Part shown: positions 3,980 through 62,364 of the stretch, one piece after another | Numbering within the stretch: the stretch's first letter is position 1 | How the letters are laid out: each line of letters opens with the position of its first letter | Assembly (NCBI RefSeq): GCF_006345805.1 | Contig: NC_043005.1 | Coordinates: forward strand, 20,522,001 to 20,586,000 | Source: Octopus sinensis | Taxonomy: Eukaryota | DNA length: 64,000 nt | Reading direction: 5' to 3' | Position numbers and translations under genes: made by a program | The notes under the pieces: generated by a model | The model's database searches: none | What the model saw: the letters and a program-made list of their open reading frames with translations, nothing else | What the model was told of the DNA's origin: nothing

Positions 3980-4216
3980 CTGATGATGATGATGTTAATA
4001 GATTTAAAGCAACTTCTGTACCAAAGCAAAGTACTATTGGACGGCTTAAAGGTGTGAAATTAAAGGAATGTCTTCATGCTTGCCAACTTTATCCAGGATG
4101 CTTATCTTTTGCGTACAATGAGGATTTTACATTGTGTAATCTGAATAATGCAAGTTCCGGAACTCAAGAACTTAAACCCAATGATAAAACTTGGGATACT
4201 TACTTCATTAACCCAA
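3980..4216 (+). CDS. Exon A1, PAN/apple-like domain (xDDDDVNRFKATSVPKQSTIGRLKGVKLKECLHACQLYPGCLSFAYNEDFTLCNLNNASSGTQELKPNDKTWDTYFINP)
   Basis: Acceptor ttttttccag, donor gtcagt, 237 nt. The C-x3-C-x5-C-x-S-F-x-Y...C-x-L pattern and terminal W-D-x-Y match the PAN module (4-Cys type). Confidence 0.88.
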
Positions 4217-4319
4217 GTCAGTAGCATTTTCATTTTATTAATTGTATGAGTGTTTGTGTATATTTACATATACCTATATGTGTGTACATAACAACATATG
4301 AATATATTTAAGTAACATA

Positions 4320-4660
4320 CGTTGCCTTACTGGCGCTTGTGCTGGTGGCACGTGAAAAAACATTCAAGCGAGGTCATTGCCAGTGCTGCTGGACTGGCAC
4401 CTGTGCAAGTGGCACATAAAAAGCTCCATTTGAGCGTAGCATTGCCAGTACTGCCAGACTGGCCCTCATGCCGGTGGCACGTAAAAGCACCCACTACACT
4501 CTCAGAGTGGTTGGCGTTAGGAAGAGCATCCAGCTGTAGAAACTCTGCCAGATCAGATTGGAGTCTGGTGCAACCATCTGGTTCACCAGAGCTCAGTCAA
4601 ATCGTCCACCCATGCTAGCCTGGAAAGTGCACGTTAAATGATGATGATGATGATGATGAT
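4320..4660 (+). mobile_element. SINE or LINE-tail repeat with (GAT)n tail
   Basis: ggcgttaggaag(a/g)gcatccagctgtagaaac...catgctagc...gttaaatgatgatg. Also at 11121-11460 (both orientations), 14740-14960(-), 36095-36350(+), 40930-41080(-) and 63070-63225(-). Confidence 0.7.
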
Positions 4661-4661
4661 G

Positions 4662-4697
<36 letters not shown>

Positions 4698-4791
4698 ATA
4701 TATATATATATTATATATATATCCAGAATTTAGAGAATGTATTTGATAAAATCTAGGTTACACATGTTATATAGCTAGCAAACCTCAGAAG

Positions 4792-4824
<33 letters not shown>

Positions 4825-5269
4825 TTATACATATATATGTACACTCACACACAAACAAGAAATTACAATAAACACAAGTTGATATCATTTGTTTCTAATT
4901 ATGCTTCACCACTGAATTTCTTTGGAACCTTCATTTAATGTTTCAAGAGAAATCGGATAATCAAATGCAACACATTATCGAGGACCCTGTTAATGTAACC
5001 ATGATGTTCTCGTGATCTGATGAGCCAACTTTTTTTGCTTTCACATAATGCTGTCACACTCCAGATTGAGCTAAATCTTATCTACTAATTAGCAAATGAA
5101 TATAATATGAAATTCAATGAATCAAAATTTCAGGTTCTTCATTATGGAGTTGACATGCACAAAACTTATTAGACATCAGAAAACCAATTATTGAAAGCTC
5201 AAAAAAATATACTAGACTTAGGAGTAATCATGTCAAATGCTGCATCTTTCATCAGACATCAACTTGATC

Positions 5270-5650
5270 TTTTGCTAACCAACCACATGGTTCTGGGTTC
5301 AGTCCCACTGCGTGGCATCTTGGGCAAGTGTCTTCTGCTATAGCCCTGGGCCGACCAATGCCTTGTGAGTGGATTTGGTAGACGGAAACTGAAAGAAGCC
5401 TGTCGTATATATGATATATATATATATGTATGTTTGTGTGTCTGTGTTTGTCTCCCTAGCATTGCTTGACAACCGATGCTGGTGTGTGTTTACGTCCCCG
5501 TCACTTAGCGGTTTCGGCAAAAGAGACGAGAAGAATAAGTACTGGGCTTACAAAGAATAAGTCCGGGGTGATTTGCTTGACTAAAGGCGGGTGCTCCAGC
5601 ATGGCCGCAGTCAAATGACTGAAACAAGTAAAAGAGTAAAAGAGTAAAAG
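5270..5650 (+). mobile_element. tRNA-head SINE
   Basis: ttgctaaccaaccacatggttctgggttcagtcccactgcgtggc...gatttggtagacggaaactgaaagaagcc. A fuller copy lies at 11478-11900(+), an inverted copy at 62590-62950(-) and a head fragment at 23770-23880. Confidence 0.7.
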
Positions 5651-5779
5651 AGAGTATCTTATTGGATGAAAACCTTCATAACTCAAGAACCAGTAGTTCT
5701 GCTGACTCTATGGAAAGCCTTAGTTATGAGTATACTAGCTTACTGCTCAGAGCTTTGATCTCCATATAGACCCAGTCTC

Positions 5780-7689: not shown

Positions 7690-8800
7690 GTATGCTCCAC
7701 CCTTTTCACCCAATGTTAAAACTTGCATGGGAAGAATTTTCCTTAGTTTAAGGATAAACACTTCACCCAATCACACATAACAGAGATTTGTTTAATAGGC
7801 ACAACCTGAGAATCTCGTTCAGTTGTGCACCCAGCATTAAGAAAATTTTAGTGAGTACCCCTAAGCCATGAGCAGAAGCAGTATGCTCATGTATGTGAAA
7901 TGACAACCAAGTGGGGATTGGTTAAAACTGCATGGGAAGAATTTTCCTTAGTTTAAGGATAAACACTTCACCCAATCACACATACAGAGATTTGTTAATA
8001 GGCACAACCTGAGATCTCGTTCAGTTGTGCACCCAGCATTAAGAAAATTTTAGTGAGTACCCCTAAGCCATGAGCAGAAGCAGTATGCTCATGTATGGTG
8101 TATAATGACAACCAAGTGGGGATTGATGTGAAGTTTAAGGTTTGAATTGGTAGCTAGCATTAACAGCCAGAGCAACAACCTAAGCACCAATGACACTACT
8201 AACAGCAGCAATGATGACAACAATGACAGTGGTGGCAGCAGTGCCTCAAGCAGCAGAGGCAACAATACCAACAGTCATGATGGCAGTTGCAACACTGACA
8301 TTGCGGCCAGGAGTGGCCTCTACACTAGCAACACATCTTCAAGAATAACAGCACTGACAGTGACTCTAGGACAGCATCTATGGCAATAAGAACAACATCA
8401 AACCTGGAGTTTATGAAACAAACATCAGTGATGGTGGTACATCCAATACACAAACAGTTCAACTGGGCCCCCATTTATACAATATCTGAACAACCACAGG
8501 TCCTCTATTAGGTTACAAGAAAGGCATAACATTACATCCCTACCAGTCACGTATGGCACTTAAAAGAGAAAGGAACATAAGTGAAAACTCTCTGAGCAGC
8601 CAGGACCTTATATTAATGGAAGCAAGCAATGTAAGCTTTGCTTGGCAGAGAGAGCAAGAATCCTAGAAAACTTACCTGACATGGAGACCTTTTTAAACTT
8701 CAGGAAAGAATTATGTTGTCAATGCCCACATCTAAAACATTTCCTACTACAAACCTGGAATTCCCCATTCATTGTGGCAGAGTTTCAAATATCACTATGG
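7690..8800 (+). mobile_element. Penelope-like element relic (post-RT linker plus GIY-YIG tail)
   Basis: PFSPNVKTCMGRIF...DKHF...FNRHNLRISFSCAP and YINGSKQCKLCLAERARI...LNFRKELCCQCPHLKHFLL are characteristic PLE motifs. Confidence 0.65.
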
Positions 8801-9039
8801 CTGGAACATTTGCATGGTGGATAACATCATCCAACCTGTAACACTTCCTGCATGGACAAATATTTTTTGTTTACAAAACTAATTGACCTCCACTTGTAGA
8901 GAGGTTATGCACCTTTGGGCATTTGCATCTGACAAGTTGCCTGTACATCTAAGCACTTTATAGGTGTGAAACCAATGGTCACTCTCTGACTGGTCATAGC
9001 CATTAACTTACTAAACATATATATATATATATATATGTA

Positions 9040-10793
9040 GAGGTTGAAAAGGAGCACACAAGTTGATATATATGGAAAAAAATGTCAAGATAGAAAATGC
9101 TAAAATAATCTTATAAAAAACATTTCAGTACCGATTTCAGTCATTGAGACTTTTTCAACTGTAAGTATGGAAAACAATTAAATTTGGAAAAATTAAAAGA
9201 ATATTTGTATAGTGTTCAAATACAAGTGGTATTTTCCTTGTTTCTGTCTGTCTCTGTCTCTCTTGTTTTCTCTTGTGGGTTTGAGGTCATTGTAAATTCT
9301 TGGTAGGGAAGAAGAAGAAGAAGAAGAAGAAGAAGAGAGAAGAAGAAGAAGAAGAAGAAGCAGAAGAAGAAGAAGAAGAAGAAGAAGAAGAAGAATGTGG
9401 GAGTGCCATGACAGTAGTATGTTGAATGATCAGCTGTCCTGAAAATGACCAGCTGTGGATGGTAGCGGTCACTGTTCAATTCACAAAACATCTCTTTTGA
9501 ATGTTTTGTGTATAAAATTTGCGTAGGTGTTATTCTAAACAGCAATATTGATAAAGAGTTAGGAAGGAGACAAAGAAGAAGAAGAAAGAGAAGGGAGAAT
9601 AAGAAGAAATGTAGGTAGTGTGAAAGTAGTAAGGTGTTAAATGTTCAAATGACTTAAAATTGGCAAGTTATGGATTATAGCAGTGATTGGGACTATTTTT
9701 TAATGAATTATTGGGAATCTCTTGTATGTATCATTTTTAATATTTGCGTGTGTATTTGTGTTATTCTAAGGCCATGGTGGATATGTCGTTTGTTGTAGAT
9801 GCGTTCAAAAAGGGTCTGTATTTTGTAATAAAGAGCGTCTCTTTACTAATTCGTTGGCTCCAGGTTGTATCGTCCCTGAATTGGTAGAGGGGAAAAATTC
9901 TGAAGCTTGGATTTTTGTTATTGGTGCAAATGTCTATATGTTGGCTGAATGCTATTTTTCTGTTTTGGGGAATTTTGATCTGGGATCTGTGCAGAGCCAT
10001 TCTTTTACATAGACTGTTTTTTGTTTGGCCTATGTATTGCTCTTGACACCCAGAGCAGGTTAGTGCGTATATCAGGTTCTCCAAAGCACATGTGAAGTTG
10101 CTTTTCACTGTGAAACATTGTCCATGTTTGAAGGAGAACTCTGATCCCGCAATTAAATTGTCACATATCCCACAGTTGGGTCTTCTGCATTTTTTTAATG
10201 ATAGTGCGTCTTTGGAGGATTAAGTTCATTCTGTGGTCCTTTTTTAGCAGGGGTATATTTTGGAGGATGGTGTCGAAGGCTTTATTTTTGAGAGGGTTGT
10301 GTGTGGAGATGTATGGTAGGGCTTTTGGTTGTAAATCTTTCTTTAATTTGGGATGTCTGAGTTACTGCATGTTGAGTTGAAGGGCACGTTGAAAGCATAT
10401 GTCAATTAATGAAGGTGAGTAGTTTCTGGTGATGAGTGTATCTTTTAGTTCATGTAGTCGTGTGTCTCTGGTGTCTGCATTAGAAACTATAGTACATATC
10501 CTTTTTGCTAGGTTGACGGGGATATTCATTCTGGTGTGTCTGGGGTGGCATGAGTTGAACGGTAAATATTGCTTGAAATCCATAGGCTTATAGTATATAT
10601 CTGTTTTTATTACATTGTTAGATTTCTCAATGAAGATGTCGAGGAAGGGAAGTTGTTGCTGGCTATATTCCATCGTAAATTGAATGTTTACATCAAGTCC
10701 ATTTAAAAGTGCTTGGAATTCTTTAAGTTTCTCTATATTTTCATGCCAAAGAATGAAACAGTTATCTAAGTATCTCTTCCAGAGACAGTACTT
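9040..10793 (-). mobile_element. 5'-truncated Penelope-like retroelement (RT C-half plus GIY-YIG endonuclease), inactive
   Basis: WKRYLDNCFILW (YxDD mutated to YLDN), LPFLDI, IYYKPMD..QYLPFNSCHP, then NLIYALTCSGCQEQYIGQTKNSLCKRMALH (ORF 9761-10108). A stop follows the RT part. Confidence 0.9.
9308..9395. repeat. (GAA)n microsatellite
   Basis: Visible directly. Confidence 0.95.
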
Positions 10794-11077
10794 TCTTGAT
10801 ACACCAAACATTTCAGTTGCTTTCGTTATGCTAGCACCTCCCAAACGAGCACCAACAACATGACCTCTTTGAAAGTCTGATAGATCTGTCATTTTAATGA
10901 ATATTAATTACCTTTTTCTGATGATATCTGAAAAGAAACAGCAATTTAGCAAAACATATTAAGCAACACTAATAATAAATCAAAAAACATAAAAATAAAC
11001 AAGAATTTGATGGTTTTATAGATATTTCAAAATTATGATGGATGCTAGGTGTTTCCATTATTTTGTCCAACCCCTCT
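10794..11077 (-). mobile_element. Tc1-like transposon 5' end (TIR plus N-terminal HTH)
   Basis: TIR-like ta|gaggggttggacaaaataatggaaacacc on the minus strand, and MTDLSDFQRGHVVGARLGGASITKATEMFGVSR, a Tc1 transposase N-terminus. Confidence 0.75.
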
Positions 11078-11120
11078 ACATGTATAGACATATATATATG
11101 TTTTCATGAAATATATATAT

Positions 11121-11460
11121 CATCATCTTCCTCATCAAAATTTAACGTCTGCTTTCCATGCTAGCATGGGTTGGACGATTTGACTGAGGACTGGCGAACC
11201 AGATGGCTGCACCAGGCTCCAGTCTGATCTAGCAGAGTTTCTACAGCTGGATGCCCTTCCTAACACCAATCACTCCGAGAGTGTAGTGGATGCTTTTACA
11301 TGCCACCAGCACAAAGATGGCGTTAGGAAGGGCATCCAGCTGTAGAAACTCTGCCAAATCAGATTGGAGCCTGGTGCAGCCATCCGGTTCGCCAGTACTC
11401 AGTCAAATCGTCCAACCCATGCTAGCATGGAAAGCGGACGTTAAATGATGAGGATGATGA
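11121..11460. repeat. Head-to-head inverted pair of the (GAT)n-tailed repeat (arms ~11121-11268 and ~11318-11460)
   Basis: The arms are near-exact reverse complements separated by a ~50 nt spacer. Confidence 0.85.
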
Positions 11461-11641
11461 TGATGATATACACATATGGGCGCAGGAGTGGTTGTGTGGT
11501 AAGTAGCTTGCTAACCAACCACAGGGTTCCGGGTTCAGTTCCCCTGCATGGCACCTTAGGCAAGTGTCATCTACTATAGCCTCAGGCCAACCAAAACCCT
11601 GTGAGTGGGTTTGGTAGATAGAAACTGAAAGAAGCCTTTTG

Positions 11642-13027: not shown

Positions 13028-13267
13028 ATGTTCATTCACATTTTATAAAAATAAAAGAAGCAATACTGGATGTACCTGAGAAAACATTGTGGACAAAGAA
13101 GAAAGTAGCAGTAGACGCCTGTGCAAAACAATGTTGGTCTGACAAAAATTGTTTATCATTTGAAATTATTAAAAAAAGTGGCTACTGTTACTTATCAAAG
13201 AAATCTGCAGCTACTGTTACGAAAATAAAATCAGACAAAAGCAGAGATTACTACCAACGAGTAAAAC
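13028..13267 (+). CDS. Exon B1, PAN/apple-like domain (xVHSHFIKIKEAILDVPEKTLWTKKKVAVDACAKQCWSDKNCLSFEIIKKSGYCYLSKKSAATVTKIKSDKSRDYYQRVK)
   Basis: Acceptor attttag, donor gtaatt, 240 nt. Pattern C-A-x-x-C-x-S-D-K-N-C-L-S-F-E...C-Y-L-S...D-Y-Y. Confidence 0.9.
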
Positions 13268-15535: not shown

Positions 15536-16117
15536 GAAAGAAGGTTTGAAAATGCAATTTAAAAGATGTTTATTTACTTTACCGGTTTCACTCTTTGGAA
15601 AAAGATTATCAAAAGTAACATGTGGAAGTTTGGTTGCGTTAATTATTGATTGTTGCAAATTGCTACATTACATAAATATATACAGTCTTTGGAAACAGGG
15701 ACATGTTAAGGACATAAAAAAGTACAACAGTATGTTGAGAATATAAAGAGGTTTAACAAGCTCATTGAAAAAATGGGCAGAAAAGATTAAAACAAATATA
15801 TTATACATCTCAGGGTAATTTCCAGGAGAAATTATTAAAAAAGTTCAGTACAGAATATTATGAATTCAAAAAGATTTACATTAATGTAGTGGCGAGGTTG
15901 TTACTGACCTGTCCGTTTTAGCAGTAATGTGGAATTGAAAAGGATGTACCCGTTTTTTTCTTTTTTGGCTTTCCTTCAAGCATCAATGATTTTGGGGTTA
16001 GGATGAGGTGAATATGTGTAGGATGGTGTGTGTATACGCATGCCTGCCCGTGCGCACGCGTGTTCGTGCACGTGCGCGTCTTCGCGTGTGTGTGGGCCAT
16101 ACACACACACTACATAT

Positions 16118-16148
<31 letters not shown>

Positions 16149-17845
16149 TCATACACATACATACCACACACACACACATCTCTCACACACACACACACAC
16201 ACATACACCACACATACACACATAATCTACACACACACAACACACACACACACAACACACATACATACAGAACACACACACATGTGTATGTGTATGTTAT
16301 ATGTATATATATGTTATATGTATGTGTATATGTATATGTATACATTGTATGTATGTATATTGTGTGTATATGTGGTATATTTATGTATGTGCATGTAAAC
16401 ATTATATATATATATATATGTATATATGTATATGCATTGTCTATGTATATATATTATATGTATGTATTGCGTATGTATGTTATATGTATATATTGTGTAT
16501 GTGTATTATATATATGCTGTGTATGTGTACTGTATGTATATATGTGTTAGGTGTATATGTGTTGTATTTATATTATGTATGTATGTGTGCGTGTGTTGTG
16601 TGTGTGTGTGTTATGTGTGTGTGTGTTGTGTGTGTGTTGTATGTGTGTATATTATATATAAATATATGTTATATTTGTGTGTTGTGTGTGTGTATTATAT
16701 GTATGTGCGTTGTGTGTGTGTGTGTTCTGTATGTATGTGTGTTGTGTGTATGTGTGTTGTGTGTGCGTAGATTATGTGTGTTGTGTGTGTGTAGATTATG
16801 TGTGTATGTGTGTTGTGTGTGTGTATGTGTGTGGTGTATCTGTGTGTGTATGTGTGGGGTGTGTGTGTGTGAGATGTGTGTGTGTGTGTGGTATGTATGT
16901 GTATGATGTGTGTGTGTGTGTGTGTGTATATATGTATATGTAGTGTGTGTGTATGTCCCACACACACGCGTAGACACGCACGCATGGGCGGGCACGCATA
17001 TACACACCATCCTACCCCCAAAAATTCTTTAAACAACACACATCTATTTACACCACCCTGAAACCAATCAAAAACAGCCCCCACACACACACAGACACTT
17101 GTATACGTGTATGTGCATGCACACAGGGACACACACACTCACCAATCTCACCTCCATACAGGCACACATATATACACACGCAGCACCATGTCAAATGCCA
17201 TCCACACACATACATGCGTACACGCGCACACACACGCACACACACAACACCATGACAACCACACACACGTTTGACAAACAGACACCATCTGACCAAATAC
17301 TACAGACACACAGACACATCTATTCACACCACATGTATATATATGCACACACACATACACGCAGAGACCACATATTCACCTCATCCTAACCCCAAAATCA
17401 TTGATGCTTGAAGGAAAGCCAAAAAAGAAAAAAACGGGTACATCCTTTTCAATTCCACATTACTGCTAAACGGACAGGTCAGTAACAACCTCGCCACTAC
17501 ATTAATGTAAATCTTTTGAATTCATAATATTCTGTACTGAACTTTTTAATAATTTCTCCTGGAAATTACCCTGAGATGTATAATATTGTTTTAATCTTTT
17601 CTGCCCATCTTTTCAATGAGCTTGTTAAACCTCTTTATATTCTCAACATACTGTTGTACTTTTTTATGTCCTTAACATGTCCCTGTTTCCAAAGACTGTA
17701 ATTTTATGTAATGTAGCAATTTGCAACAACCAAATTAACGCAACCAAACTTCCACATGTTACTTTTGATAATCTTTTTCCAAAGAGTGAAACCGGTAAAG
17801 TAAATAACATCTTTTAAATTGCATTTTCAAACCTTCTTTCGTATA
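15531..17845. repeat. Nested inverted duplication around a CA/TG/TA low-complexity core
   Basis: 15531-16016 is the reverse complement of 17371-17845, and ~16020-16180 mirrors ~16900-17020. Differences are mostly small indels. Confidence 0.85.
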
Positions 17846-17921: not shown

Positions 17922-19241
17922 AAAGGGCTTAGTAAAATAAATTACTTTGCCGCATACTGAACTCATTAGAAATAGCAGCTAAAAAACTTTTTTAAGGCTA
18001 TTTCTAATACTTAAAGAAAATCTCTCTCATATATAGTGTTTGCTTAATTCAACTCACAAAAGTTTGGGGGTAAGGACATCGAAAAATCAAATGCTAAGGT
18101 TATTCGAGAACGTACGTTTCAAGATTAGTCAAAACAACATTTCTATCATCGGCTCAGAAATCCTTGGTTTGGATTTGGAAACACTGAAAATAAGAACATA
18201 CCCTTTCGAAGATCTGCTCCCAACTAACAGTGCCAACAAATTCAAAATAAGCAAGCGAAGAATCTCTGTTCTCCCCTTTCCACCAGCGTGGGTTAAAATC
18301 ATCAAACACTATGCTTATTTCGGTAAAATCCGAAGCATTAATCAGAGGGAGATTAATTATAATTTCAACAATTGAGGGCAAAATTAATTAATTATTAATC
18401 AATTTCACCGTACGTTCTCGAATAACCTTAGCATTTGATTTTTCGATGTCCTTACCCCCAAACTTTTGTGAGTTGAATTAAGCAAACACTATATATGAGA
18501 GAGATTTTCTTTAGTATTAGAATAGCCTTAAAAAAGTTTTTTAGCTGCTATTTCTAATGAGTTTCAGTATGCGGCAAAGTAATTTATTTTACTCCCTTTT
18601 ATATAATGTAATAATTTGAATTCGCCTTGAATGGTCCCTTTGCATACTGAACACTTGGTGAAATTGATTAATATTAATTAATTTTGCCCTCAATTGTTGA
18701 AATTATAATTAATCTCCCTCTGATTAATGCTTCGGATTTTACCGAAATAAGCATAGTGTTTGATGATTTTAACCCACGCTGGTGGAAAGGGAGAACAGAG
18801 ATTCTTCGCTTGCTTATTTTGAATTTGTTGGCATTGTTAGTTGGAGCAGATCTTCGAAAGGGTATGTTCCTTATTTTCAGTGTTTCCAAATCCAACCAAG
18901 GAATTTCTGAGCCGATGATAGAAATGTTGTTTTGACTAATCTTGAAACGTACGTTCTCGAATAACCTTAGCATTTGATTTTTCGATGTCCTTACCCCCAA
19001 ACTTTTGTGAGTTGAATTAAGCAACACTATATATGAGAGAGATTTTCTTTAAGTATTAGAAATAGCCTTAAAAAAGTTTTTTAGCTGCTATTTCTAATGA
19101 GTTCAGTATGCGGCAAGTAATTTATTTTACTAAGCCCTTTTATATAATGTAATAATTTGAATTCGCCTTGAATGGTCCCTTTGCATACTGAACACTTGGT
19201 GAAATTGATTAATAATTAATTAATTTTGCCCTCAATTGTTG

Positions 19242-19245
<4 letters not shown>
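17913..19245. repeat. Array of a ~541 bp unit: one inverted copy (17913-18409) then direct copies (18410-18600 partial, 18600-19140 full, 19141-19245 partial)
   Basis: Near-identical sequence in both orientations, giving mirrored ORFs 18040-18375(+) and 18674-19027(-). Confidence 0.85.
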
Positions 19246-19293
<48 letters not shown>

Positions 19294-23337: not shown

Positions 23338-23571
23338 CCACTGATGAGTTTATTACAGTTAAAAGTGTTGGTGCACCAAAGAAGGATCATTTTGGATGGC
23401 TTAGGAATGTGAAATCAAAGGAGTGTAATGAGGATTGCTATCAACATCCACTGTGTAATTCTTATCAGTACAATGAGAAACTTAAACATTGTGGTCTGAG
23501 TAATGGTACACAATTCACTCATGTACTTAAACCCAGCAATGAAGGTTGGGATACATACATAGTTAATCCAG
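23338..23571 (+). CDS. Exon A2, PAN/apple-like domain (xTDEFITVKSVGAPKKDHFGWLRNVKSKECNEDCYQHPLCNSYQYNEKLKHCGLSNGTQFTHVLKPSNEGWDTYIVNP)
   Basis: Acceptor tttttccag, donor gtcagt, 234 nt. Paralog of A1 with the 4 Cys conserved. Confidence 0.88.

Positions 23572-25447: not shown

Positions 25448-25532
<85 letters not shown>
25448..25532. repeat. (GA)n microsatellite
   Basis: Visible directly. It is an expansion of a short gagagag at the orthologous position after C1 (~12450-12465). Confidence 0.95.
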
Positions 25533-28461: not shown

Positions 28462-28701
28462 GAACTGGGACCCATTTTGTGAAAGTAAAAAATGCAGTTC
28501 TGGATGTGGATGGGAAAACACCATTGCATATTAAAGATATAACAGCAGAAGCCTGTGAACAGAAATGTTGGTCTGACAAAAAATGTTTGTCATTTGAAAT
28601 AAGTGAAAGAAAGGAAATGTGTTACTTATCAAAAGCGTCAGCAGCTTCCTCCAATAAAATAATCAAAGTCATTGGCAAAGATTACTACCAACGAGTAAAA
28701 T
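28462..28701 (+). CDS. Exon B2, PAN/apple-like domain (xTGTHFVKVKNAVLDVDGKTPLHIKDITAEACEQKCWSDKKCLSFEISERKEMCYLSKASAASSNKIIKVIGKDYYQRVK)
   Basis: Acceptor aactctag, donor gtaatt, 240 nt. 41/80 aa identical to B1 by hand alignment. Confidence 0.9.
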
Positions 28702-32024: not shown

Positions 32025-32255
32025 CTGATGACGTGACTTTTGTATTTAAAAGTATTACCATACCAGGGCAGAATAATATGGGACGGCTTAAGAAATTGAA
32101 GTTAAAAGAGTGTCATCAATCTTGTCTACATCTAGGATGTAATTCTTATGAGTACAATGAGAAAACTAAGTTATGTGATCTAAGTAATGCGACTCACATG
32201 ACCCATGAACTTGAAACCAGCTTTGAACGTTGGGATCTTTATATTATTAATCCAG
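32025..32255 (+). CDS. Exon A3, PAN/apple-like domain (xDDVTFVFKSITIPGQNNMGRLKKLKLKECHQSCLHLGCNSYEYNEKTKLCDLSNATHMTHELETSFERWDLYIINP)
   Basis: Acceptor tttttccag, donor gtcagt, 231 nt, open frame. Confidence 0.88.
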
Positions 32256-44050: not shown

Positions 44051-44379
44051 TCAGCCGATTGTAATGCATAAACATCATTTCATACTAATACAGCACATAT
44101 GTTCAAATGCTTGCGCGGTGTTGTGAAATTTCAAGAAATCTTTTGTCGACTTGGTTTTATAACAGCCTAAACAATATCTAATTTTCCATCAAAATCTCGT
44201 TACACATATGTACATAAATACATAGATATATGCAATACATACATACCAGCACAATACACATATGTAACTTTTAGAACTCTAAGAAAAATGGAGGTGTAAG
44301 GAATGTGCAACTTTAAGACAGAAGTGGTTGGTTGGTAAGCTTGCAATAGTTGTTCATATGCAGCGTTTCTGCTGTCCAG

Positions 44380-44945
44380 GCTAACTGGGAAGATAGTTTT
44401 TATATGTGGCAGATGCTCGGGAGCAATAAACACTGGAAATGCACAGAGAACAACTTCTGCCACATTCCAGAAATAAAAACTAGAAGTAGTTGATAGCTTC
44501 TGTTACCTAGGTGACCAAGTCAGTAGCGGGGGAGGGTGCACTGAAAGTGTAGTTGCTAGAATAAGAATAGCTTGGGCAAAGTTCAGAGAGTTCTTACCTC
44601 TGCTGGGGACAAAGGGCCTCTCGCTCAGAGTAAAAAGTAGACTGTATGATGCTTGTGTATGAACAGCCATGCTACATGGTAGTGAAACATGGGCTGTGAC
44701 TGCTGAGGACATGCATAAGCTCACAAGGAATGAAGTCAGTATGATCCAATGGATGTGTAATTTCAAAGAATCTTGAGAGAAAAGTTGGACCTAAGAAGCA
44801 TCAGATGTGGTGTGCAAGAGAGACGACTTCACTGTGATGAGAATGGATGAGGATAGCTGTGTGAAAAAGTGCCACACCCTAGCGGTTGAGAGAACCTGTG
44901 TAAGAGGTAGATCCAGGAAAACCTGTTATGAATTGGTGAAGCACG
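44380..44945 (+). mobile_element. RTE LINE 3' fragment
   Basis: KLEVVDSFCYLGDQVSSGGGCTESVVARIRIAWAKFREFLPLL...LYDACV*TAMLHGSETWAVT; same family as 59330-61370. Confidence 0.85.
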
Positions 44946-45458
44946 AAAAAAGACTGCAAAATCTGTAAAGTGATGAGTTTGTCATGATTAACCATATTCA
45001 GTTACATCCTTTTACAATTTTGGTTAAAATACCAAGATGCATTCTGCTTTTCATACTTCTAAAGTTGATAAAACAAGCTCAATTCAAGTACTGAAGTTGA
45101 TTTATTTTTCTCTATTGTCTCAGCAGAATGTGTGGTTATGTGCATATATGTTAGGAACCATTATTATTAGTATTGTTAACTTCAACAATAATTACTCATC
45201 TTAAGTTTGATGGATTGACAGATCATTCAAGCATCAGACAAAATATGTTGTGGTATTTGTTCTGGCTCTTTAACCTTTGTGTTCAAATCTTGCTAATGCA
45301 AACTTTGCCCATCCAGGGTCAATAAAATACAATGCCAGTCAAGTTTAGGGGCCAGTTTAATTGACCAACTCTTACCGCAAAGTTTTGCCCTTCATTCTAT
45401 TGGAAATTGTTATCATTATTGTTATTTTTCATCCGTCTAAATTTTACTTCAATTCTAG

Positions 45459-45695
45459 ATTCTCAGATCCATTTTGTGAAAGTAGCAAATGCAATTCTGG
45501 ATGTAAAAGGGAAAACATTATGGAATAAGAAAAAAGTAACAGCAGATGCATGTGCTGAAAAATGTTTGTCTGATAAAAATTGTTTATCATTTGAAATAAC
45601 TAAAGGAAGTGGAAACTGTTACTTATCAAAGCAAACTGCAGCTTCCTCAAAATTAAAGGGAAGCACAGACAGAGATTACTATCAACGACTACAAG
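45459..45695 (+). CDS. Exon B3, PAN/apple-like domain (xSQIHFVKVANAILDVKGKTLWNKKKVTADACAEKCLSDKNCLSFEITKGSGNCYLSKQTAASSKLKGSTDRDYYQRLQ)
   Basis: Acceptor aattctag, donor gtaatt, 237 nt (an in-frame one-codon deletion relative to other B exons). Confidence 0.9.
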
Positions 45696-47880
45696 GTAAT
45701 TATTTTTGTATTTCATTATTAGATTCCTTTCTTCTCTTTTTCTGAAATTTATAATTTCACCTGTACTGGGAGAAGTTGGGTTGATGAGAACCTGGTATGT
45801 TCTTGTAAACATTTAGAATGCCATTGTTCATGTTAACATCTGAAATCTTAAATGCTTGTAGCAGTTGGTGAAATCCAGTCAGCAATAGGCACTGTATTCC
45901 CTTGCATATAGGCTAACTCTGATGTGTGTAAAGTTATATCAATCGGATTGTTACCTAACACTCCATTGTATTCTTTATGCAAAACTATTTGGTAAGATCA
46001 GCCATGATGGATATTTAATACTATACATTTTGGATAAAATATATATCATGGCTATTATACAAAAGTGTTTTAAGTTCAAAATGTTGCCTTCTCAGAAAAC
46101 AAAAAAATAGTTTCACCATTCCATTTGTCTTTACATTAGCAACAGTTTCAGCTTAACAATAATTCTTTGTTGGATGCATAAAATTGTATGCATGTATGAT
46201 ATTTTCAGTCAGAAATATTTTTGCAAAACTGTTGTATGTGGGACTTACTACACTTTTGAAAATACTAAACTGTTGTACTACACTTTGATAATTTTCATAT
46301 CTTGGCATCTGAAACAACTGGAGATATGATAGTTTGACCAAAGAACTGGTTATTGCGAGCAAAATTAAGGTATTGAAAAAAACATTTGACCAGAGTTGGA
46401 CATACGACAGCTTAACATAATCGTAATGATATATATATATATATGTATTTGTTTTGCAAGATTTTTGATGTGAAGTCGTGTGTTGAAACAGATACAAAAC
46501 AAAAACAAAATCAAATTACATGAACGTATATAAACAGGAGATACAAATATTGCAGGCATTTCAGCACACACACACACTAACTAAACATAGACGCACAGAG
46601 AGGTATACGCATGTGCAAATGAAGACACATACAATAGGAATACAAAATGGCTGACCGTTAGTAAGGAGAGACACACAAATAAGAAAGAAGAAAGCAAAGG
46701 ATCAATGATGCGGCCACAGGAGTGTGATGAAAGAACTCTGGCCGAAATAAGATTAAGATTAATGTAAAAAATAAATAATGCTGAAGCAAAGTAACACCAA
46801 ATATATAGTGCATGTGTTTTTATTGGCTAAACTGGCAAAATGACCATTCCTTAATACAACAATATATATATATAATTATATATATATATAAAATGTAACT
46901 TAGATTCAGTAGAGTTAGGTACTTTGAGACACCTTGTTGGGATGAACTAATTTGTACACTCAGACAGTATTAGGTGAGTATCAAACTCTACATAGAATTT
47001 TTTCCACCTTAGTGAATAAATTTGCTCTTGTTCAGATATTTACTTTATATAAAGATACTTTCCAAATACTTCTGAAGTGCAGATTTCAGGGTAGGTGAGT
47101 AAAATATAAATGAGTTACAATGATGTGTCAGTGTCAATTCATTATAGCTGTTTCAAACATCTCCTTCAATTGATCAATGAAAGCATTACATCATTACAAA
47201 GAGAACCGTTCTCATCAATTGACCGCATAGACTTCAAGCATAAAAGATAAGTTAGATTTTTAGACATATTCAATATCATCAATAGAGAGCAAATATTTAC
47301 AATGATGCCACTGCTAAATTTTTTGGCAGAATGAGAAAAATGAAAAAGGACAGTATAGACACACACAAACTTGAGAATTAGCATGGGCTAGAGCTGCAGG
47401 GAATTTCAAATAACTAAGTGGATACTGTATAATCTAAAATTTCATAATAAAAGATTGCAGCAAATAACAAATTTTATGAAAAAGTTAAAAAGTTATAAAT
47501 TACCACCAGATTTTTATGCTATAAAACTTGAAAAAAAAACGAAGAAATAAACATAAAAAATAAAAAATGTGAAGAAATATAAGTATAAAATATAATATAG
47601 AAGAATATAAAAAGTATATAGAATATACATCTGAATACATGAAAAAATAAACATAAAATATATAATCTGTAATAAAAATATAATTTTAAGTTCACAGTAT
47701 ACAATGGGATCTATGTAAAAAGATTTAACCTATCAAAGCAATTAATAAAACGCACAAAAATTATGAAAATATATGAAGAGTATATAAAATCTTAAGACAT
47801 ATAAGGATATAAGATTTATAAAATATATAAGGAAATATAAGAAATTTCTGAAAGAAGAATTACAATCAAAACCATAAAAA

Positions 47881-48474: not shown

Positions 48475-50510
48475 AACTGCTGTTCAAAAGGAAAAGATCC
48501 ATTTTTGCTGCCACTGCTGGACATCAGTTCCACTCTCTTTTGGCTTCTTTCCCAGAGCTCGTAGATCCAACTTTCAAATCAGTGAAAGTCACACACTCAA
48601 CTCACCATTATATCACTACTTCTGGACCACCTGTTTTTTCGCGTCCATGGCGACTTGCTCCTGATTGGCTCAAAAAGGATCGATCTGAGTTTGAGCATAA
48701 GCTTCAACTTGGCCTTATTCTCCCCTCCGCCAGCCCTTGGGCATCTCCTCTTCATTTGGCATGGAAAGGGGATTCAGAATTTCGACCGGTGGGGGATTAC
48801 AAACGTTTGAATGCGGTCACTGTTCCCAATCACTATCCGATAAGAAATCTCCAGGATTTTTCTTCAAACTTGCATGGTTGTACTATTTTTCCCCTAGGTT
48901 GAGCTCATCCAGGCTTATCAAATTCTGATGAACCCTGACGACATTCCAAAAACTGCTGTTACCATCCCTTTTGGAAGTTTCGAGTTCCTGTTTACGAGCT
49001 TCAGTTTGTGGAATGCAATGAGTACATTCAAGAGGTTTATTGATGCAGTTATCCATGGACTTGACTGTGTGTTCACTTACGTGGATGATTTGCTCATAGC
49101 TAGCAATACGTGAAAATCACCTCCAACATTTATCTCAACTTTTTCAGTGTCTTCGTACCTACAATGTGTGAATCAACACCGAATTTCTAGGTCATTATAT
49201 TGACTCTAATGGTATCCGACCTCCCTCCCTCCTCCAAAATCAATGCAATTCAACGCATCTCTCCTCCCACTTCTTTACGCCAACTGCGTCATTTCTTGGG
49301 AATCATCAACTTCTACAGGAGATTCATACTTAAATGTGCAGACAAATTACTTCCCTTGCCTCAACTATTAAAAGCAAATAAAAAAAAATTCTATCATTTT
49401 ATCTGTCGAGGCATTATCTTCTTTTGAGTCAATCAAGAAGGAAAAAGCTTCTGTTCCTTTGCTTGCACATCTGGTTCTTGATGCTCATCTCTCTTTAACA
49501 GTTGATGCATCGGATTCTGTGGTCGGTGTTGTTTTACAACATACAGTCGATAATCAAATTCGACCTTTGGCATACCTTTCTCGTCAATTAAAGCCAGCTG
49601 AATGTTGTTACAGTACGTTTGATTGTGAACTCTTAACAATCTACCCATCAGTTTGTCATTTTCAATATCAGCTCGAGGGCTGAGATTTTGTGATTTATAC
49701 TGATCACAGGCCTCTTACGTTTGCTCTGTCATCTAAATCGGACAGATACTCGCCTCATGCTTTTCGTCACCTGGACTACATTTCCCAGTTCAAGAGTAAC
49801 ATTCGGCATATACCTGGAACAGAGAACATACCTGATGACGCACTCTCTTGTCTCCCTGTGTGTTCTCTTTCATCTCCTGCAATTGATTTAACTGCCATTG
49901 TGCAGGATCAGCCAGCTCTGGACACATTGGATCTAACTTCTACCAAGTTGTCCTGTTGCATGTTTGCCTATCTTCCACTTCCGTCTGCTGAAGGCACAAT
50001 CCTTTGTGACACAGACACTGGTTCTCCCAGGCCGTTTGTACCTATGAACCACCAGTGTTCTATTTTTAATGCCTTGCATTCACTGTCACATCCTGGCAGT
50101 GCTGCCTTGGTGAAGCTTCTTAAGGTTCAGTTTTTCTGGCCTAATATGCACTGGATGATCACCACTAGGGCATGCTCTTGTGTGAAATGCCAGCATTCTA
50201 AAATCCACAGGCACATTCGTGCTCCTCTTCGACAGTTTTCTCCGCCGGAGACTCGCTTTCACCATGTCCACATTGATCTGGTTGGGCCATGGCCTGTCAG
50301 TCGCGGTTTCTCTTACATATTAACATGTGTCAATTGTTTCTCTCATTGGCCTGAAGCCATTCCAATAGTGGACATTTCCACTGAGTCAGTTGCTTGAGCT
50401 TTCGTTTCTAATTGGATTGCACATTTTGGTGTTCCAGCTAAGATAACCAATGACCATGAACGCCAGTTCGAAGCTTCCTTATTTTGTGAATTATCACAAA
50501 ATGATCTCAG
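48475..50510 (+). mobile_element. Ty3/gypsy LTR-retrotransposon pol relic (RT-RNase H-integrase), no LTRs seen
   Basis: SPWASPLHL...FRPVGDYKRLNAVT..YPI, YVDDLLIAS, TVDASDSVVGVVLQ, IYTDHRPL, HSLSHPG...C-x2-C, HVHIDLVGP. The domain order is gypsy-type. Multiple stops and frameshifts. Confidence 0.93.
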
Positions 50511-52621: not shown

Positions 52622-52852
52622 CTAATAAGCCTTTGGAGCTTAAAAGCGTTAGCATACCCACGAAGGATACTTTCAATCAGCTTAAGGATAAGACTTTAAA
52701 GCAGTGCAATGAAGCTTGCCAAAATTATTATGGATGTTATGCTTATGCATACAGTGAGAAAGCTAAGACATGTGGACTTAGTAATGTGACTCAGTTGACT
52801 GATGTACTTAAACCCAACAATGGAAATTGGGATGTATATATAATGACACCAG
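52622..52852 (+). CDS. Exon A4, PAN/apple-like domain (xNKPLELKSVSIPTKDTFNQLKDKTLKQCNEACQNYYGCYAYAYSEKAKTCGLSNVTQLTDVLKPNNGNWDVYIMTP)
   Basis: Acceptor ctttttccag, donor gtcagt, 231 nt. Confidence 0.88.
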
Positions 52853-53429: not shown

Positions 53430-53970
53430 GATGGAAATGAGGTTATTAAAGACCCAGGAAGACATGGGATGAGGTGGTCAAGCATGACCTTCGAACGTTG
53501 GGCCTCACAGAGGCAATGATGAAAGACCGAGCGAGATCTCTGGAGATATGCTGTGACTGCGAAGACCTGACAAATAATGTGAGTTCATGGCTGCTTCTTG
53601 CACCAGTTTCGCATAGCACCAGCCCATCCAAAGTACCTTGGATTGCAGAACGACCTGCTGTGCTTACCTTGGATCGTAGGGTAACCTGCTGTGCTTGAGG
53701 AGACCTATTGAGTCAAGTACATCAACATCAAAATAAATTTCAAATGGAAATTGTAGTTATGATACATGTGCCAGCAGCATGTAAAAAGCACCATCCGAAC
53801 TTGGCCAATACCAGTGCTGACTTGACTGACTTCTGTGCCGGTGGCATGTGACCTGCTGTGCTTGAGGAGACTTATTGAGTCAAGTACATCAACATCAAAA
53901 TCAAAATCAAATGGAAATTGTAGTTGTGATACCTGTGCTGGTGGCATGTAAAAAGCACCAACCGATCATG
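53430..53970 (+). mobile_element. RTE 3' end and UTR fragment with an internal duplication
   Basis: RPRKTWDEVVKHDLRTLGLTEAM-type C-terminus. acctgctgtgcttgaggagac.tattgagtcaagtacatcaacatcaaaat occurs twice. Confidence 0.6.
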
Positions 53971-56669: not shown

Positions 56670-56909
56670 ATTCTCAGCTCCATTTTGCGAAAGTAGCAGA
56701 TGCAGTTCTGGATGTAACTGGGAAAACATTGTGGAGTAAGAAAAATGTAACAGCAGATGCTTGTGCAAAAAAATGTTTGTCTGACAAAAATTGTTTAGCA
56801 TTTGAAATAGTTAAAGGAAATGGAAACTGTTACTTATCAAAGAAAAGTGCAGAACTCTCCAAGACATTAAAGACAGATGAAAGTAGAGATTACTACCAAC
56901 GAGTAAAAT
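56670..56909 (+). CDS. Exon B4, PAN/apple-like domain (xSQLHFAKVADAVLDVTGKTLWSKKNVTADACAKKCLSDKNCLAFEIVKGNGNCYLSKKSAELSKTLKTDESRDYYQRVK)
   Basis: Acceptor aactttag, donor gtaagt, 240 nt. About 57/80 aa identical to B3 by hand. Confidence 0.9.
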
Positions 56910-58560: not shown

Positions 58561-58989
58561 CCCACTCCTTATTTACCAGAACATACAACTTCAGTCATTA
58601 TATTATGAAGTCATTGAAAAACAAAATCACATGCATATGTGTGTGCATATACATGAGAGGTATTTGAATATATATGTGTATGCATATAGATATGTATATA
58701 ATTGTGTAGTTTCCATGCATGCATGCATATATCATTTGTGAGATTTTCCAACATTGTTCTTGAACTAATAATTTCAAACATATAGTTACCTACCTACTTA
58801 CATGTGAGTATACCTGTGTACATACACACATACATACATATGTGTATGTATTAAAATATACATTCCAAATCAGATTGCTGTAGCATGGATGAATCTTATT
58901 GCCAAAAATGAAAGCTCTCAGTTGATAGAAAACTATATGCCTAAACAACTTTATACGAGCTGTCTCAACCAATTCCTTCAGGATCAGTG

Positions 58990-59310
58990 AATTCAATGAC
59001 ATTGTGACTGATGAGCCTGCAGGTGGAGAGAAGGGAATGATGGGATGTGCCAGATACCTTTTGATAAACAAAGCTATGCTGTCCAAAGTAAGAAAACATT
59101 GCAAAATCCCTGTGCTAATATTGTTTGATTATAGGAGAGCATTCAAATCTATTCCCCACACATGGCTACTAAAGTTTTTGCACTCAGTAAAAGTACCTGC
59201 TATCCTAGTTGCTGCCATTGAAAGGCTCACAAAGACCTGATAAACAATCCTACAAAGAAACAATGACAACACAAGGATGTTGATTAATCTCCCTTTTAAT
59301 AATGCTCTAA
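58990..59310 (+). mobile_element. R4/Dong-like non-LTR RT fragment
   Basis: EKGMMGCARYLLINKAML...LFDYRRAFKSIPHTWLL...VPAILVAAIERL resembles R4-clade GC..QLLID...DYKKAFDSVPH.W. Confidence 0.55.
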
Positions 59311-59329
59311 CCATAGTAGTCCATGAGAT

Positions 59330-61370
59330 TTATATCCGTCATATTTGGAGGTCATAACTTTTGTGTTATATCCTCAGCAGTCATGGCCCATGTTTCACTA
59401 CCACGTAGCATGGCTGTTCGTACACATGCATCATACAGTCTGCCTTTTACTCTGAGCGAGAGGCCTTTTGTCACCAGCAGAGGTAAGAGCTCTCTGAACT
59501 TTGCCCAGGCTATTCTTACTTTAGCAGTTACACTTTCAGCACACCCACTGACTTGGTCACCTAGGTAACGGAAGCTATCAACTATTTCTAGTTTTTCTCC
59601 CTGGAATGTGGTGGAAGTTGGTCTCTGTGCATTTTCAGTGTTTATTGCTCCTGAGTATCTGCTACATAAAAAAACTATTTTCTTAGTTAGCCTTCCTTTG
59701 ACATTGCTGCACCTCTTATCTGTCCATAGCTTACACATGGTACATCTTATAGAGTTTCTACCTATACCTTTTCTACAGATCGAGCAGGGCCATCTACCTG
59801 AAGGCGTTTGTGATTTGTCTACCTTCCTACTTATTAGGACTTTGGTTTTAGCTAGGTTGACTCTAAAGCCCTTCGATTCTAATCCTTGCTTCCACACCTG
59901 AAATTTCTCCTCCAGTTCTGATAGTGACTCAGCAATTAGAGCAAGGTCCTCAGCATAGAGGAGCTCCCAGGGGCATCCTGTCTTGAATTCCTCCATTATT
60001 GCCTGGAAAACTATGATAAATAGGAGGGGGTTGAGGACTGAACCTTGGTGGACCCCTACCTCTACTCGGAATTCTTCACTGTACTCGTTGCCCACCCTCA
60101 CCTTACAAGCAGCATTCCTGTACATGGCTTGCACAGCTCTCACTAACCATTCATCTATCCCTAGTTTCCTCATTGACCACCAGATAAGGGATCGGGGGAC
60201 CCTGTCGAAGGCTTTCTCCATGTCAACAAAAGCCAGCTACAGGGGCTTATCTTTGGCTAGGTATTTCTCCTGCAGCTACCTTACCAGGAATATAGCATCA
60301 GTGGTACTTTTCCCTGGCACGAACCCAAACTGCATCTCATCTAAACTGACTCTCTCTCTAATTAGTTGGGCTATGACCCTCTTTGTAACCTTCGTTACCT
60401 GATCCAACAGCTTGATACCCCTGTAGTTATTTGTATCTAAGGCGTCACCTTTACCTTTGTAGCAGTTGACTATTATGCTGCTACACTAGTCATTGGGAAT
60501 GACTCCTTCGTGTATCACCTGGTTAACTATACGGGTGACTAGGCTATAGCTGACACTACCAGATATTTTGAGCATCTCTGTAGTAATTCCTGATGGGCCT
60601 GGGGTTTTCCCTGTCTTCATGCTTCTAATCGCCTTAACTACCAAGGAACTGTCAACTCGGATAGCTGGTCCCTCTGTTGAGTCAACATTCGGCAGACTCT
60701 CTTTATCCCATTCATTTTCTTTATTCAGCAACCTTTCATAGTGGCGTCTCCAAACTTCTCTCTTTGCATCCTCATTTAGCGCAAGTGAACCATCATCCAT
60801 GCAAACAGATTTCTCTCCTACCACATCACGATTCTCTCTCACACACTGTCTTGCAACACGAAATACCTCAAGTCTTTCATCCTCACGGTGCAGAACATTG
60901 GCAAATGTTTTCTTATCTGCTTCCCCTCTGGCTAAATACACCTGCCTCCTAGCTTCCCTTGTGACAGTCTGATACACTTCCCTGCTACCACCGTTCTTCC
61001 AGTCCTTCCAAGCCTGTTTCTTTTGTCTAATATCCCTGTCAACAATATTATTCAACCACGACGTTATTTTGGGTCTTGAGGGGACTTTGCACCAACCACA
61101 GATCTGGTCAGTGGCTCTCAGGTTGTCTCTTAGAAACCTCCAGTTGTCTTCTACCCCATGTGAAGCTATATTTCCTTCTATTTCATCAAAGGCTTCAAGT
61201 AATATGTCTTTAAATCTCTGTCCATTTGCAGGATCTTTAAGCTTCCAGACCCTTCTTCTCCATGTTGATCATCTTCTGGTTGTCCTCTTAGTCCTGATCC
61301 TAAAGTCACTAACTACCAGTCTATGTTGTGGGGTACCACGAAAACTAGCAGCCATGAAGGGGCGCCTCTC
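59330..61370 (-). mobile_element. RTE-clade LINE, truncated at both ends, inactive
   Basis: PGPSGI, NYRGIKLL, FVDMEKAFDRVP, GVHQGSVLNPLLF, LLYAEDL (YADD mutated), a Cys-rich insert and GSETW. Endonuclease tail QHRLVVSDF. Several in-frame stops. Confidence 0.93.
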
Positions 61371-62133
61371 ATCTTTGGAAAAGGAATACTTAGTAGTAGT
61401 TATAAGAGACCTAATTGAGAGAGAGATATGTTGCAGATTTAGGGTAGATGCGTGAGCTAAATTTATCTTAAACATCGATAAGTAAGAGGAACTATAGAAT
61501 TATATATTTAACATGAGACGTGAGGCTGAAATTTATCTTAGACATTGATAAGTAAGAGGAACAATAAAATTATATATATATTTAACATGAGACTATATAA
61601 CAGATAATTATGTAGAAGTACCATGTAATTGAAATTTTAAATAAAATTTCATATGAACAATTTAATATAAAAACACAGGCCATCCACAAAATTATTTTTC
61701 GGTATAAGTCACCCTCCTAAGAATTAATGGGAACTCTAATACATAATGAGACCTACTTGGAACCTTGCCTCACTGTTTAGAATGTAGCTAAGCCATTTGT
61801 ACAACCCTCTTCTGATGGTATGCTTTTGCTTAAGACTGAATTACCACAACAACCCTTGATATGTTGGTTTACACCTTGACCCTTTAAAAGTACACCAATA
61901 GAAGATGGACGTAGAAGTGGGCATATGCAACTTCAATTTTGAAATAAATTTTCAAATCTGTCTCAACATGTGCTACAGCTCAAATTCTAAGTTGTCATTT
62001 TCCAATGAATTATTTGTTTGTAATAGATTGTCCATTTAAAATGAATTATGCACCAGATGCTATATAATATTTAATGTGTGTGTGTGTGTGTAAGTATGAA
62101 ATGTATTTCTTGTTTTCTTTCTTTTCTTTCTAG

Positions 62134-62364
62134 CTGAAGGTGTTTTAATATTTAAAAAAGCTTCGATACCAGGTTATGATACATTTGGTCAGCTGAAAAA
62201 TGTGAGCTTAAAGGAGTGTGAGCATACTTGTTATCAAACTCCAGGATGTAACTCTTATGAGTATCAAGAAAGTTCTAAAATTTGTGATCTGAGTAATGTG
62301 ACCCACTTGATTCGTAACCTCGAACCTAATGCTGAAGATTGGGATACTTATGTCATTAACCCAG
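62134..62364 (+). CDS. Exon A5, PAN/apple-like domain (xEGVLIFKKASIPGYDTFGQLKNVSLKECEHTCYQTPGCNSYEYQESSKICDLSNVTHLIRNLEPNAEDWDTYVINP)
   Basis: Acceptor tctttctag, donor gtcagt, 231 nt. Read directly from the sequence; not in the ORF track. Confidence 0.88.

Follow-up and report, generated by a model that had tools for sequence, protein, structure and literature searches.

A 58-kb region of the Octopus sinensis genome carries a series of small exons, each encoding a single PAN/apple or Sushi domain, and the question it raises is what kind of gene such a series belongs to. The region lies at positions 3980-62364 of the window, by which we mean the whole stretch of DNA that was analysed (64,000 nucleotides; contig NC_043005.1, positions 20,522,001 to 20,586,000 of the forward strand). 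On balance, we favour the explanation that it comes from the interior of an octopod gene of very large size, or that the chain of gene fragments to which it belongs is one locus, and that the product would be a secreted, multivalent PAN/Sushi binding protein.

Searching the window by tblastn with module queries found exactly 14 modules, all on the + strand, with no further match at E<0.1 and no additional modules in the long introns. They follow the order A-C-B-A-C-B-A-C-C-B-A-C-B-A, where the letters A and B denote two subtypes of PAN/apple and the letter C denotes a Sushi/complement control protein (CCP) module, with one four-cysteine module per exon. Together with the reading of splice sites, this confirmed the exons, their order and their coordinates as proposed in an earlier sequence-only reading. 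The outermost exon bases, 3980 and 62364, were derived independently and are identical in both. The exons are as follows, with Pfam E-values or bit scores and module identities where given.

Exon A1, 3980-4216, + strand: PAN subtype A, 79 codons; PAN_1 1.8e-09, 37.7 bits; carries an N-x-S sequon
Exon C1, 12156-12326, + strand: Sushi, 57 codons; borderline at 20.3 bits against a cut-off of 20.7
Exon B1, 13028-13267, + strand: PAN subtype B, 80 codons; PAN_1 4.5e-09; 55% identity to the B module of GON-Abd-1
Exon A2, 23338-23571, + strand: PAN subtype A; PAN_1 9.6e-09
Exon C2, 25150-25319, + strand: Sushi, 170 nt, frame broken
Exon B2, 28462-28701, + strand: PAN subtype B
Exon A3, 32025-32255, + strand: PAN subtype A
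Exon C3, 36442-36612, + strand: Sushi, first of a doublet
Exon C4, 40154-40324, + strand: Sushi, second of the doublet, of the 'DY..I.C' subtype; Sushi 21.7 bits
Exon B3, 45459-45695, + strand: PAN subtype B
Exon A4, 52622-52852, + strand: PAN subtype A
Exon C5, 55171-55341, + strand: Sushi; 2e-05, 25.3 bits
Exon B4, 56670-56909, + strand: PAN subtype B; PAN_1 8.3e-10
Exon A5, 62134-62364, + strand: PAN subtype A; 54% identity to the A module of GON-Abd-1

All 14 exons have an acceptor with a polypyrimidine tract and AG, and all 14 have a GT donor (GTCAGT after A; GTAAAA, GTACTG or GTAATA after C; GTAATT or GTAAGT after B). Every exon is phase 1-1, its two leading bases completing a codon and its single trailing base opening the next. 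The A and B exons measure 231-240 nt and the C exons, other than C2, 171 nt; in 13 of the 14 the length is a multiple of three. The junction residues ...NP|VF..CG, ...CK|D..HF and ...YYQRVK|x are common to the window exons and to annotated paralogue proteins, which lends independent support to the derived junctions. Each of the 14 modules holds exactly four cysteines, and every A module has an N-x-S/T sequon at one fixed position, just after the fourth cysteine. The conceptual product is lysine-rich (13.6%) with an isoelectric point of 8.9, the B and C modules being basic. The sequence-only reading was also right that part of the series is hidden from an open reading frame (ORF) list: C1, C4 and C5 are missing from that list, and A5 is present only as a 56-residue piece, under the default 60-residue cut-off.

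Exon C2 is the single irregular member. It measures 170 nt against 171 nt in C1, C3, C4 and C5, all four of which are intact. Its frame shifts about 30 nt into the exon and the incoming frame reaches a stop 19 codons later; both pieces of C2 separately match the Sushi consensus, and the nine exons 3' of it are intact. The 14 exons as assembled thus do not form one open frame. The break is possibly an assembly error, a recent lesion or a skipped exon and, since all exons are symmetric, skipping C2 would keep the frame. A perfect (AG)41 repeat lies just 3' of C2, at 25451-25532. The earlier figure of about 992 codons agrees with the summed exon length of 2975 nt, but the 170 nt of C2 break the frame, and what is present is a slice of a larger array rather than a 992-codon gene.

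We next consider what the modules are. Against Pfam, the conceptual product matched PAN_1 (PF00024) at E=3.6e-65 (216 bits, nine stretches) and Sushi (PF00084) at E=1.6e-10, the two families that had been predicted. Chance is thus excluded, and no family besides PAN and Sushi was found in the product. Single exons scored 35-39 bits for PAN_1 (cut-off 21.4) and 20.3-25.3 bits for Sushi (cut-off 20.7). In the family alignments the four-cysteine core (C-x3-C ... C ... C) is invariant in both A and B, whilst C7, P10, C33, C43, W49 and C56 are invariant in C. A profile of 15 C modules matched CCP modules of CR2, DAF, CR1, MCP and MASP-2 in the PDB, at best with 3e-09 (CR2/DAF). For the A-module profile, the PDB matches were Toxoplasma MIC4, in its apple domains (2.4e-08), and SML-2, a lectin of Sarcocystis (1.2e-03). 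No PDB sequence matched the B-module profile, so B is assigned to PAN by its Pfam scores and by the fold match described below; in a profile-profile comparison B aligned to A with 93.8% probability and 22% identity.

One A-C-B unit of the predicted paralogue P0005 was modelled with AlphaFold from an input alignment of 11 units. Mean predicted local distance difference test (pLDDT) score was 77, with B at about 90 and C at about 85. A predicted template modelling score of 0.40 is expected of a beads-on-a-string chain. The model superposed on the HGF N domain with a root-mean-square deviation (rmsd) of 3.1 Å over 79-80 columns (25% identity) and on the plasminogen N-terminal region with an rmsd of 1.7 Å over 75 columns. 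It also matched the apple domains of factor XI and prekallikrein, as well as MIC4 and SML-2. Pfam, the family profiles and the fold matches thus bear out that each exon encodes a single PAN or Sushi domain. The four-cysteine PAN domain is present here in two old subtypes, A and B, and the C modules are Sushi domains.

Relatives of the window exons were sought by a word-indexed search of 5.8 billion proteins. Only eight were found, each from one of three Octopus species (O. bimaculoides, O. vulgaris or O. sinensis), under the names 'uncharacterized protein LOC...' or 'SVEP1-like'. Predicted Octopus proteins of this kind are:

O. bimaculoides: LOC106869390, LOC128248837/38/40, LOC106869402
O. 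vulgaris: CAI9728790, 'SVEP1-like', 4470 residues
O. sinensis: LOC118764741/42

These predicted proteins share the exon types, order, phases, junctions, single strand and occasional Sushi doublets of the window. The 'DY..I.C' subtype of C4 is also the second Sushi in the doublets of paralogues, and C4 is 74% identical to residues 1001-1057 of P0002. Identity to the window exons is 45-77% per module, with none above 77%, against 84% between O. bimaculoides and O. vulgaris orthologues, indicating that the product of the window and its orthologues are not among these relatives. An exact look-up of the A2 ORF gave no match. Likewise, the window overlaps none of the seven Octopus loci fetched, to which only interspersed repeats match (84-93% identity). 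Its introns, at 4.2 kb per exon, resemble those of O. vulgaris and O. sinensis, whilst O. bimaculoides has 1.8 kb per exon.

The related loci are annotated as follows.

O. bimaculoides, CM046610.1, 88.25-88.82 Mb, one strand: models of 1133, 709, 1865, 761 and 4083 residues, and so on to a model of 1067 residues
O. vulgaris, OX597823.1: models of 2247, 4470 (over 416 kb), 861, 857 and 3597 residues, head to tail
O. sinensis: one model of 2643 residues over 153 kb

Modules mapped on the seven loci (430 kb, L001-L007) form an unbroken A-C(-C)-B series on one strand, which includes the flanks and the gaps between models; intact A-C-B exons are located between P0002 and P0005, for example. Every model opens at an internal methionine within a module and none has a signal peptide. 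These starts, the lack of signal peptides and the exon-filled gaps together indicate that the gene models are fragments. The fragmented annotation foreseen from the window alone was thus found in three Octopus genomes. A small number of exons in the seven loci appear truncated, much like C2. A distinct C-terminal domain occurs only in the last O. bimaculoides model, of 1067 residues; it is a GON domain (PF08685; Pfam 6.3e-33), and the gene that comes next is CACHD1-like and unrelated. In O. bimaculoides the array covers no less than 568 kb, and its extent in O. vulgaris is similar or larger; the summed fragment models exceed 9,600 and 12,000 residues, respectively. Judged from these sequence comparisons, the window is an internal slice, with neither gene end, of an array at least ten times longer that holds well over a hundred exons. 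The array presumably continues past A5, outside the window.

Two further features of the related loci were observed. Introns of orthologous units are about three-fold longer in O. vulgaris (L005) than in O. bimaculoides (L003). Blocks of several units recur almost unchanged in the 4470-residue O. vulgaris model (P0154), a sign that blocks were recently duplicated in this species.

The origin of the repeated unit was traced with an exhaustive HMMER scan of 1.84 billion cluster representatives, using P0005 as the query. Only 13 proteins matched at E<=1e-30 and all members looked up were cephalopod, in line with the lineage restriction suggested earlier. Scores fell steeply beyond the Octopus members, to generic Sushi-repeat proteins whose alignment was confined to the Sushi doublet. 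That non-cephalopods might have this architecture too was considered and rejected, as the next-best proteins were pure Sushi-repeat proteins or annelid PAN arrays with SUEL-lectin and no Sushi. Within cephalopods, a Sepia pharaonis fragment reads A-C-C-GON, and a small secreted protein of Argonauta hians reads signal peptide-B-A-B-A, without Sushi or GON. A profile of the Octopus and Sepia C-terminal parts retrieved complete, named proteins:

GON-Abd-1, Abdopus aculeatus, R4G2C1
GON-SepT-1 and GON-SepT-2, Sepioteuthis australis, R4G2C9 and R4G7D8

These proteins of 451-503 residues have the layout signal peptide-B-A-C(-C)-GON. When the 13 intact exon peptides were compared with GON-Abd-1 by blastp, each type matched its own segment (B at 28-107, A at 108-185, C at 187-242), with identities of 46-55% for B, 39-54% for A and 45-54% for C (E 1e-16 to 2e-29). 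GON is absent from the window, an internal slice; in O. bimaculoides, the homologous array has an orthologous GON domain at its end, that of its 1067-residue last model. Gastropods have PAN-GON, Sushi-GON and EGF-GON proteins, some of them auto-named 'ADAMTS9-like'. The ancestral unit is, on these alignments, B-A-C(-C), of which A-C-B is the same cycle read from another start, and the Octopus locus is a massive internal amplification of this unit of small coleoid GON proteins. The sequence-only reading had seen no architecture known from a named gene; this is not supported in that form, as the unit occurs once in GON-Abd-1 and GON-SepT-1/2. The GON-Abd and GON-SepT names reportedly come from the coleoid posterior venom-gland transcriptomes of Ruder et al. 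in 2013.

An A-type PAN module, 42% identical, also occurs near the C-terminus of an Octopus 'ADAMTS1' protein (P0075). With the B-A-B-A protein of Argonauta (P0020), this suggests module shuffling among cephalopod secreted proteins. An O. vulgaris skin-mucus proteome includes 'Apple-like' and 'Sushi' entries, but no family identifier occurs in the supplements, and the SVEP1 listed there is a different gene. Logan proteins of 240-340 residues were rejected as transcript evidence, being read-through ORFs of single genomic exons.

The annotated models allow a different reading, in which numerous distinct genes of moderate size lie in tandem in the region, as drawn in RefSeq and ENA, and the window covers parts of one or two of them. 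We regard this as unlikely but as deserving real weight. Annotation pipelines do divide the region into models of 667-4470 residues, small independent members such as GON-Abd-1 and the Argonauta protein exist, and damaged exons such as C2 would interrupt a single frame. However, separate genes of this kind would have to start at internal methionines without a signal peptide, although their modules are of an extracellular type with a conserved sequon. Intact in-phase exons such as the A-C-B between P0002 and P0005 would also be left in the gaps between models, and a distinct C-terminal domain would be found in the last model only. One large gene, or one locus annotated in pieces, therefore remains our preferred explanation.

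We then examined how the array evolves. Within the window, copies of the same type share 39-72% protein identity, with synonymous divergence (dS) of 0.2-1.2 and a ratio of nonsynonymous to synonymous divergence (dN/dS) of 0.3-1.4. Alignments of copies over the exon and 400 nt on either side had gaps of 0-2% in exons versus 1-52% (mostly 10-30%) in bins of flanking intron. In these paralogous copies, similarity over the 50 nt of intron that adjoin each exon end is 62-80%, against 65-75% for exons, and upstream similarity of B exons extends for about 200 nt within the window. Since homology between copies reaches into the flanking introns, the units were copied as DNA, introns included, which bears out the growth by unit duplication proposed earlier. 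The conserved intron flanks may be neutral carry-over from duplication or may reflect splicing control. Upstream of B exons, an alignment at 70-80% can be carried through 200-500 nt, and O. bimaculoides units can be included in it (e.g. 44957-45458, before B3).

Selection was assessed on 16 exons that are orthologous between O. bimaculoides (L003) and O. vulgaris (L005) and stand in the identical order BACCBACBACCBACCB. Over 1067 codons, dS was 0.103 and dN 0.079, giving a dN/dS of 0.77, and mismatches were 8.1% in exons and 7.0% in aligned introns. Indels were far more unevenly distributed: the 21350 bp of intron had 153 events, which would predict about 23 for the 3216 bp of exon, but only two were seen there, making indels about 11-fold rarer in exons. 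The most conserved positions lie within 12 nt of exon boundaries, at 3.6% mismatch. In columns at least 80% conserved among independent modules (window, L002 and L004), dN/dS was 0.41, compared with 1.20 elsewhere, a value not significantly above 1; a non-independent definition of conserved columns gave 0.14 versus 1.06. Selection thus acts on the reading frame, on the splice sites and on the residues that determine the fold, whilst the rest of the surface changes at an approximately neutral rate. Two readings suit this pattern: a spacer-like chain under weak constraint, or binding surfaces that are diversifying.

The same data bear on whether the array is a decaying, non-functional relic of exon amplification, its copies being untranslated pseudo-exons. 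The C2 frameshift, the dN/dS values between window modules and between orthologues, and an exon substitution rate that is not under the intron rate are what such decay would leave. By contrast, 13 of the 14 exons are open, of in-frame length and with all four cysteines, and all 28 splice sites are intact. The rarity of exon indels, the dN/dS of 0.14-0.41 in conserved columns and the conservation of splice edges likewise speak for maintained coding sequence, and we consider a relic very improbable. A bolder form of the one-gene explanation would make the megabase-scale array a single transcription unit whose symmetric exons, joined in varying combinations between a far-off signal-peptide exon and the GON end, yield a Dscam-like repertoire of secreted PAN/Sushi binders in a mollusc, possibly in saliva or venom; this is a long shot, on a par with the relic. 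The weakest alternative of all, a cassette library in which any subset of phase-1 exons can be placed after a signal-peptide exon and before the GON exons at the end to give many small or medium-sized secreted isoforms, would draw on the 1-1 phase that lets any exon, C2 included, be skipped in frame, on the single-unit make-up of the known expressed relatives and on the conserved intron flanks, but those flanks are also predicted by duplication with ordinary splice-signal constraint, and neither the window nor the related loci (430 kb) yielded a signal-peptide exon.

Several results weigh against a single large gene for a secreted binding protein. Neither a signal-peptide exon nor a GON exon is detectable in the window, the flanks of the exon series having been put forward as the place to look for the former, and C2 is out of frame. 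The dN/dS of 0.77 and an exon substitution rate at or above that of introns would also be produced by a weakly constrained or decaying array. We know of no family member with a known ligand. The identifiers of the relatives (LOC, XP and UniProt) are absent from the searchable literature, and the family identifiers are absent from the supplement of an O. vulgaris skin-mucus proteome. The weakest step is where the protein would act: the one context known for relatives is reportedly the posterior salivary (venom) gland, a link that rests on protein names.

If the region does belong to one very large gene or locus, a mode of action can be proposed. The array would have grown in Octopus by DNA-level duplication of the unit of coleoid GON proteins, and would end in the GON domain. 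Its product would be a disulfide-rich, N-glycosylated chain of 'beads on a string', in which the unit PAN(B)-PAN(A)-Sushi(C) recurs and at times includes a second Sushi. Modules of a cysteine-rich extracellular type, a conserved sequon and the presence of signal peptides in the complete relatives suggest that it would enter the secretory pathway. MIC4 and SML-2 are multivalent glycan-binding (galactose) adhesins or lectins and the HGF N domain binds heparin; by analogy with these, each PAN module may present a ligand-binding face for glycans or proteins. With fold residues kept and the others changing at an approximately neutral rate, the modules would form a panel of different surfaces. Sushi modules would serve as spacers and secondary binding sites, and the tandem chain could thereby achieve high-avidity, multi-specific extracellular binding. 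The site of action is possibly the secretion of the salivary (venom) gland.

The domains, the phase 1-1 logic of exon shuffling and the single-unit protein are already known, and fragments of the array are present in databases as uncharacterised predictions. In the searchable literature, no discussion of the GON-Abd/GON-SepT family was found, and neither the array nor its evolutionary regime was found described; we found no description of the unit being amplified into an array of well over a hundred exons. If the array is one transcription unit, its product would be among the largest extracellular proteins of any mollusc. Retention of frame, cysteines and splice sites whilst other residues change at the pace of introns is a pattern known from recognition, reproductive and venom proteins. 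The locus also shows how octopus annotations split such genes into headless fragments with misleading names (SVEP1-like, ADAMTS9-like).

The window is AT-rich (31-41% GC), with many microsatellites and retroelement fragments, which mark it as eukaryotic; no tRNA or Rfam RNA genes were found in it. The following features were recorded.

7715-8125: tandem duplication, two copies of a 202-bp unit with 96% matches, in the A1-C1 intron
9761-10892, - strand: Penelope-like retroelement fragment, also in the A1-C1 intron, with an ORF for a GIY-YIG endonuclease (Pfam 3.1e-05); a neighbouring ORF looks reverse-transcriptase-like and has no Pfam match
15900-17400: degenerate (TG)n/(AC)n microsatellite of about 1.5 kb, giving many long spurious ORFs rich in Cys, Val, Tyr and His on both strands
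17947-19249: nested inverted repeats with arms of 43-155 nt, 97-100% complementary, giving mirror-image ORFs on both strands; probably a foldback or terminal inverted repeat element, or an assembly artefact
48540-50397, + strand: degenerate long terminal repeat retrotransposon pol in several frames, in the B3-A4 intron (RT-RNase H 2.2e-17, integrase zinc-binding 3.1e-09)
59352-61336, - strand: long interspersed nuclear element (LINE; non-LTR) in the B4-A5 intron (RVT_1 2.3e-15)

A copy of the LINE, 88.8% identical over 2 kb, lies in an O. vulgaris array intron (L005, 25666-27666). Short interspersed repeats are found at 1975-2908, 4356-4663, 5272-5659, 11112-11470, 44378-44946, 46496-46893, 53450-53752 and 63019-63226. 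They are 84-93% identical to introns in the loci of the three Octopus species, slightly more so to those of O. vulgaris and O. sinensis. Two copies of one element, at 1975-2337 and 2560-2908, lie within the first of these.

Finally, we compared the predicted product with known systems. The closest are GON-Abd-1 and GON-SepT-1/2, which have the same three module types, type for type, in the cyclic order B-A-C(-C). They differ in being a single unit of 450-500 residues with a signal peptide, whereas the window holds more than four units and neither end. Tandem PAN/apple domains are also found in the apicomplexan proteins MIC4 and SML-2, which gave the best PDB sequence matches for the A profile as well as fold matches. 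These have neither Sushi nor GON and are unrelated in gene descent. The N-terminal PAN domains of HGF and plasminogen are the closest fold matches and have the same PAN core of four cysteines; the B and C modules are basic, as is the heparin-binding HGF N domain. In those proteins, however, a single PAN is followed by kringles and a protease domain, none of which occurs in the window product. Factor XI and plasma prekallikrein combine four six-cysteine apple domains with a trypsin-like protease, whereas the window modules have four cysteines, are interleaved with Sushi and come with no protease. SVEP1 shares Sushi repeats, but its vWA, EGF, HYR and pentraxin domains are absent from the window product, from P0003, from the complete small relatives and from the Pfam list of the 'SVEP1-like' P0004, which names PAN and Sushi families only. 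ADAMTS9/GON-1 has a C-terminal GON domain, as do relatives of the array, but no metalloprotease (reprolysin), disintegrin-like or TSP1 domain is found in the window product, in P0003 or in the complete small relatives. One published study describes the GON domain of ADAMTS9/GON-1 as acting within the endoplasmic reticulum (ER), where it promotes ER-to-Golgi transport (PMC3338439). Such a role of GON may be relevant to a protein of a secretory gland.

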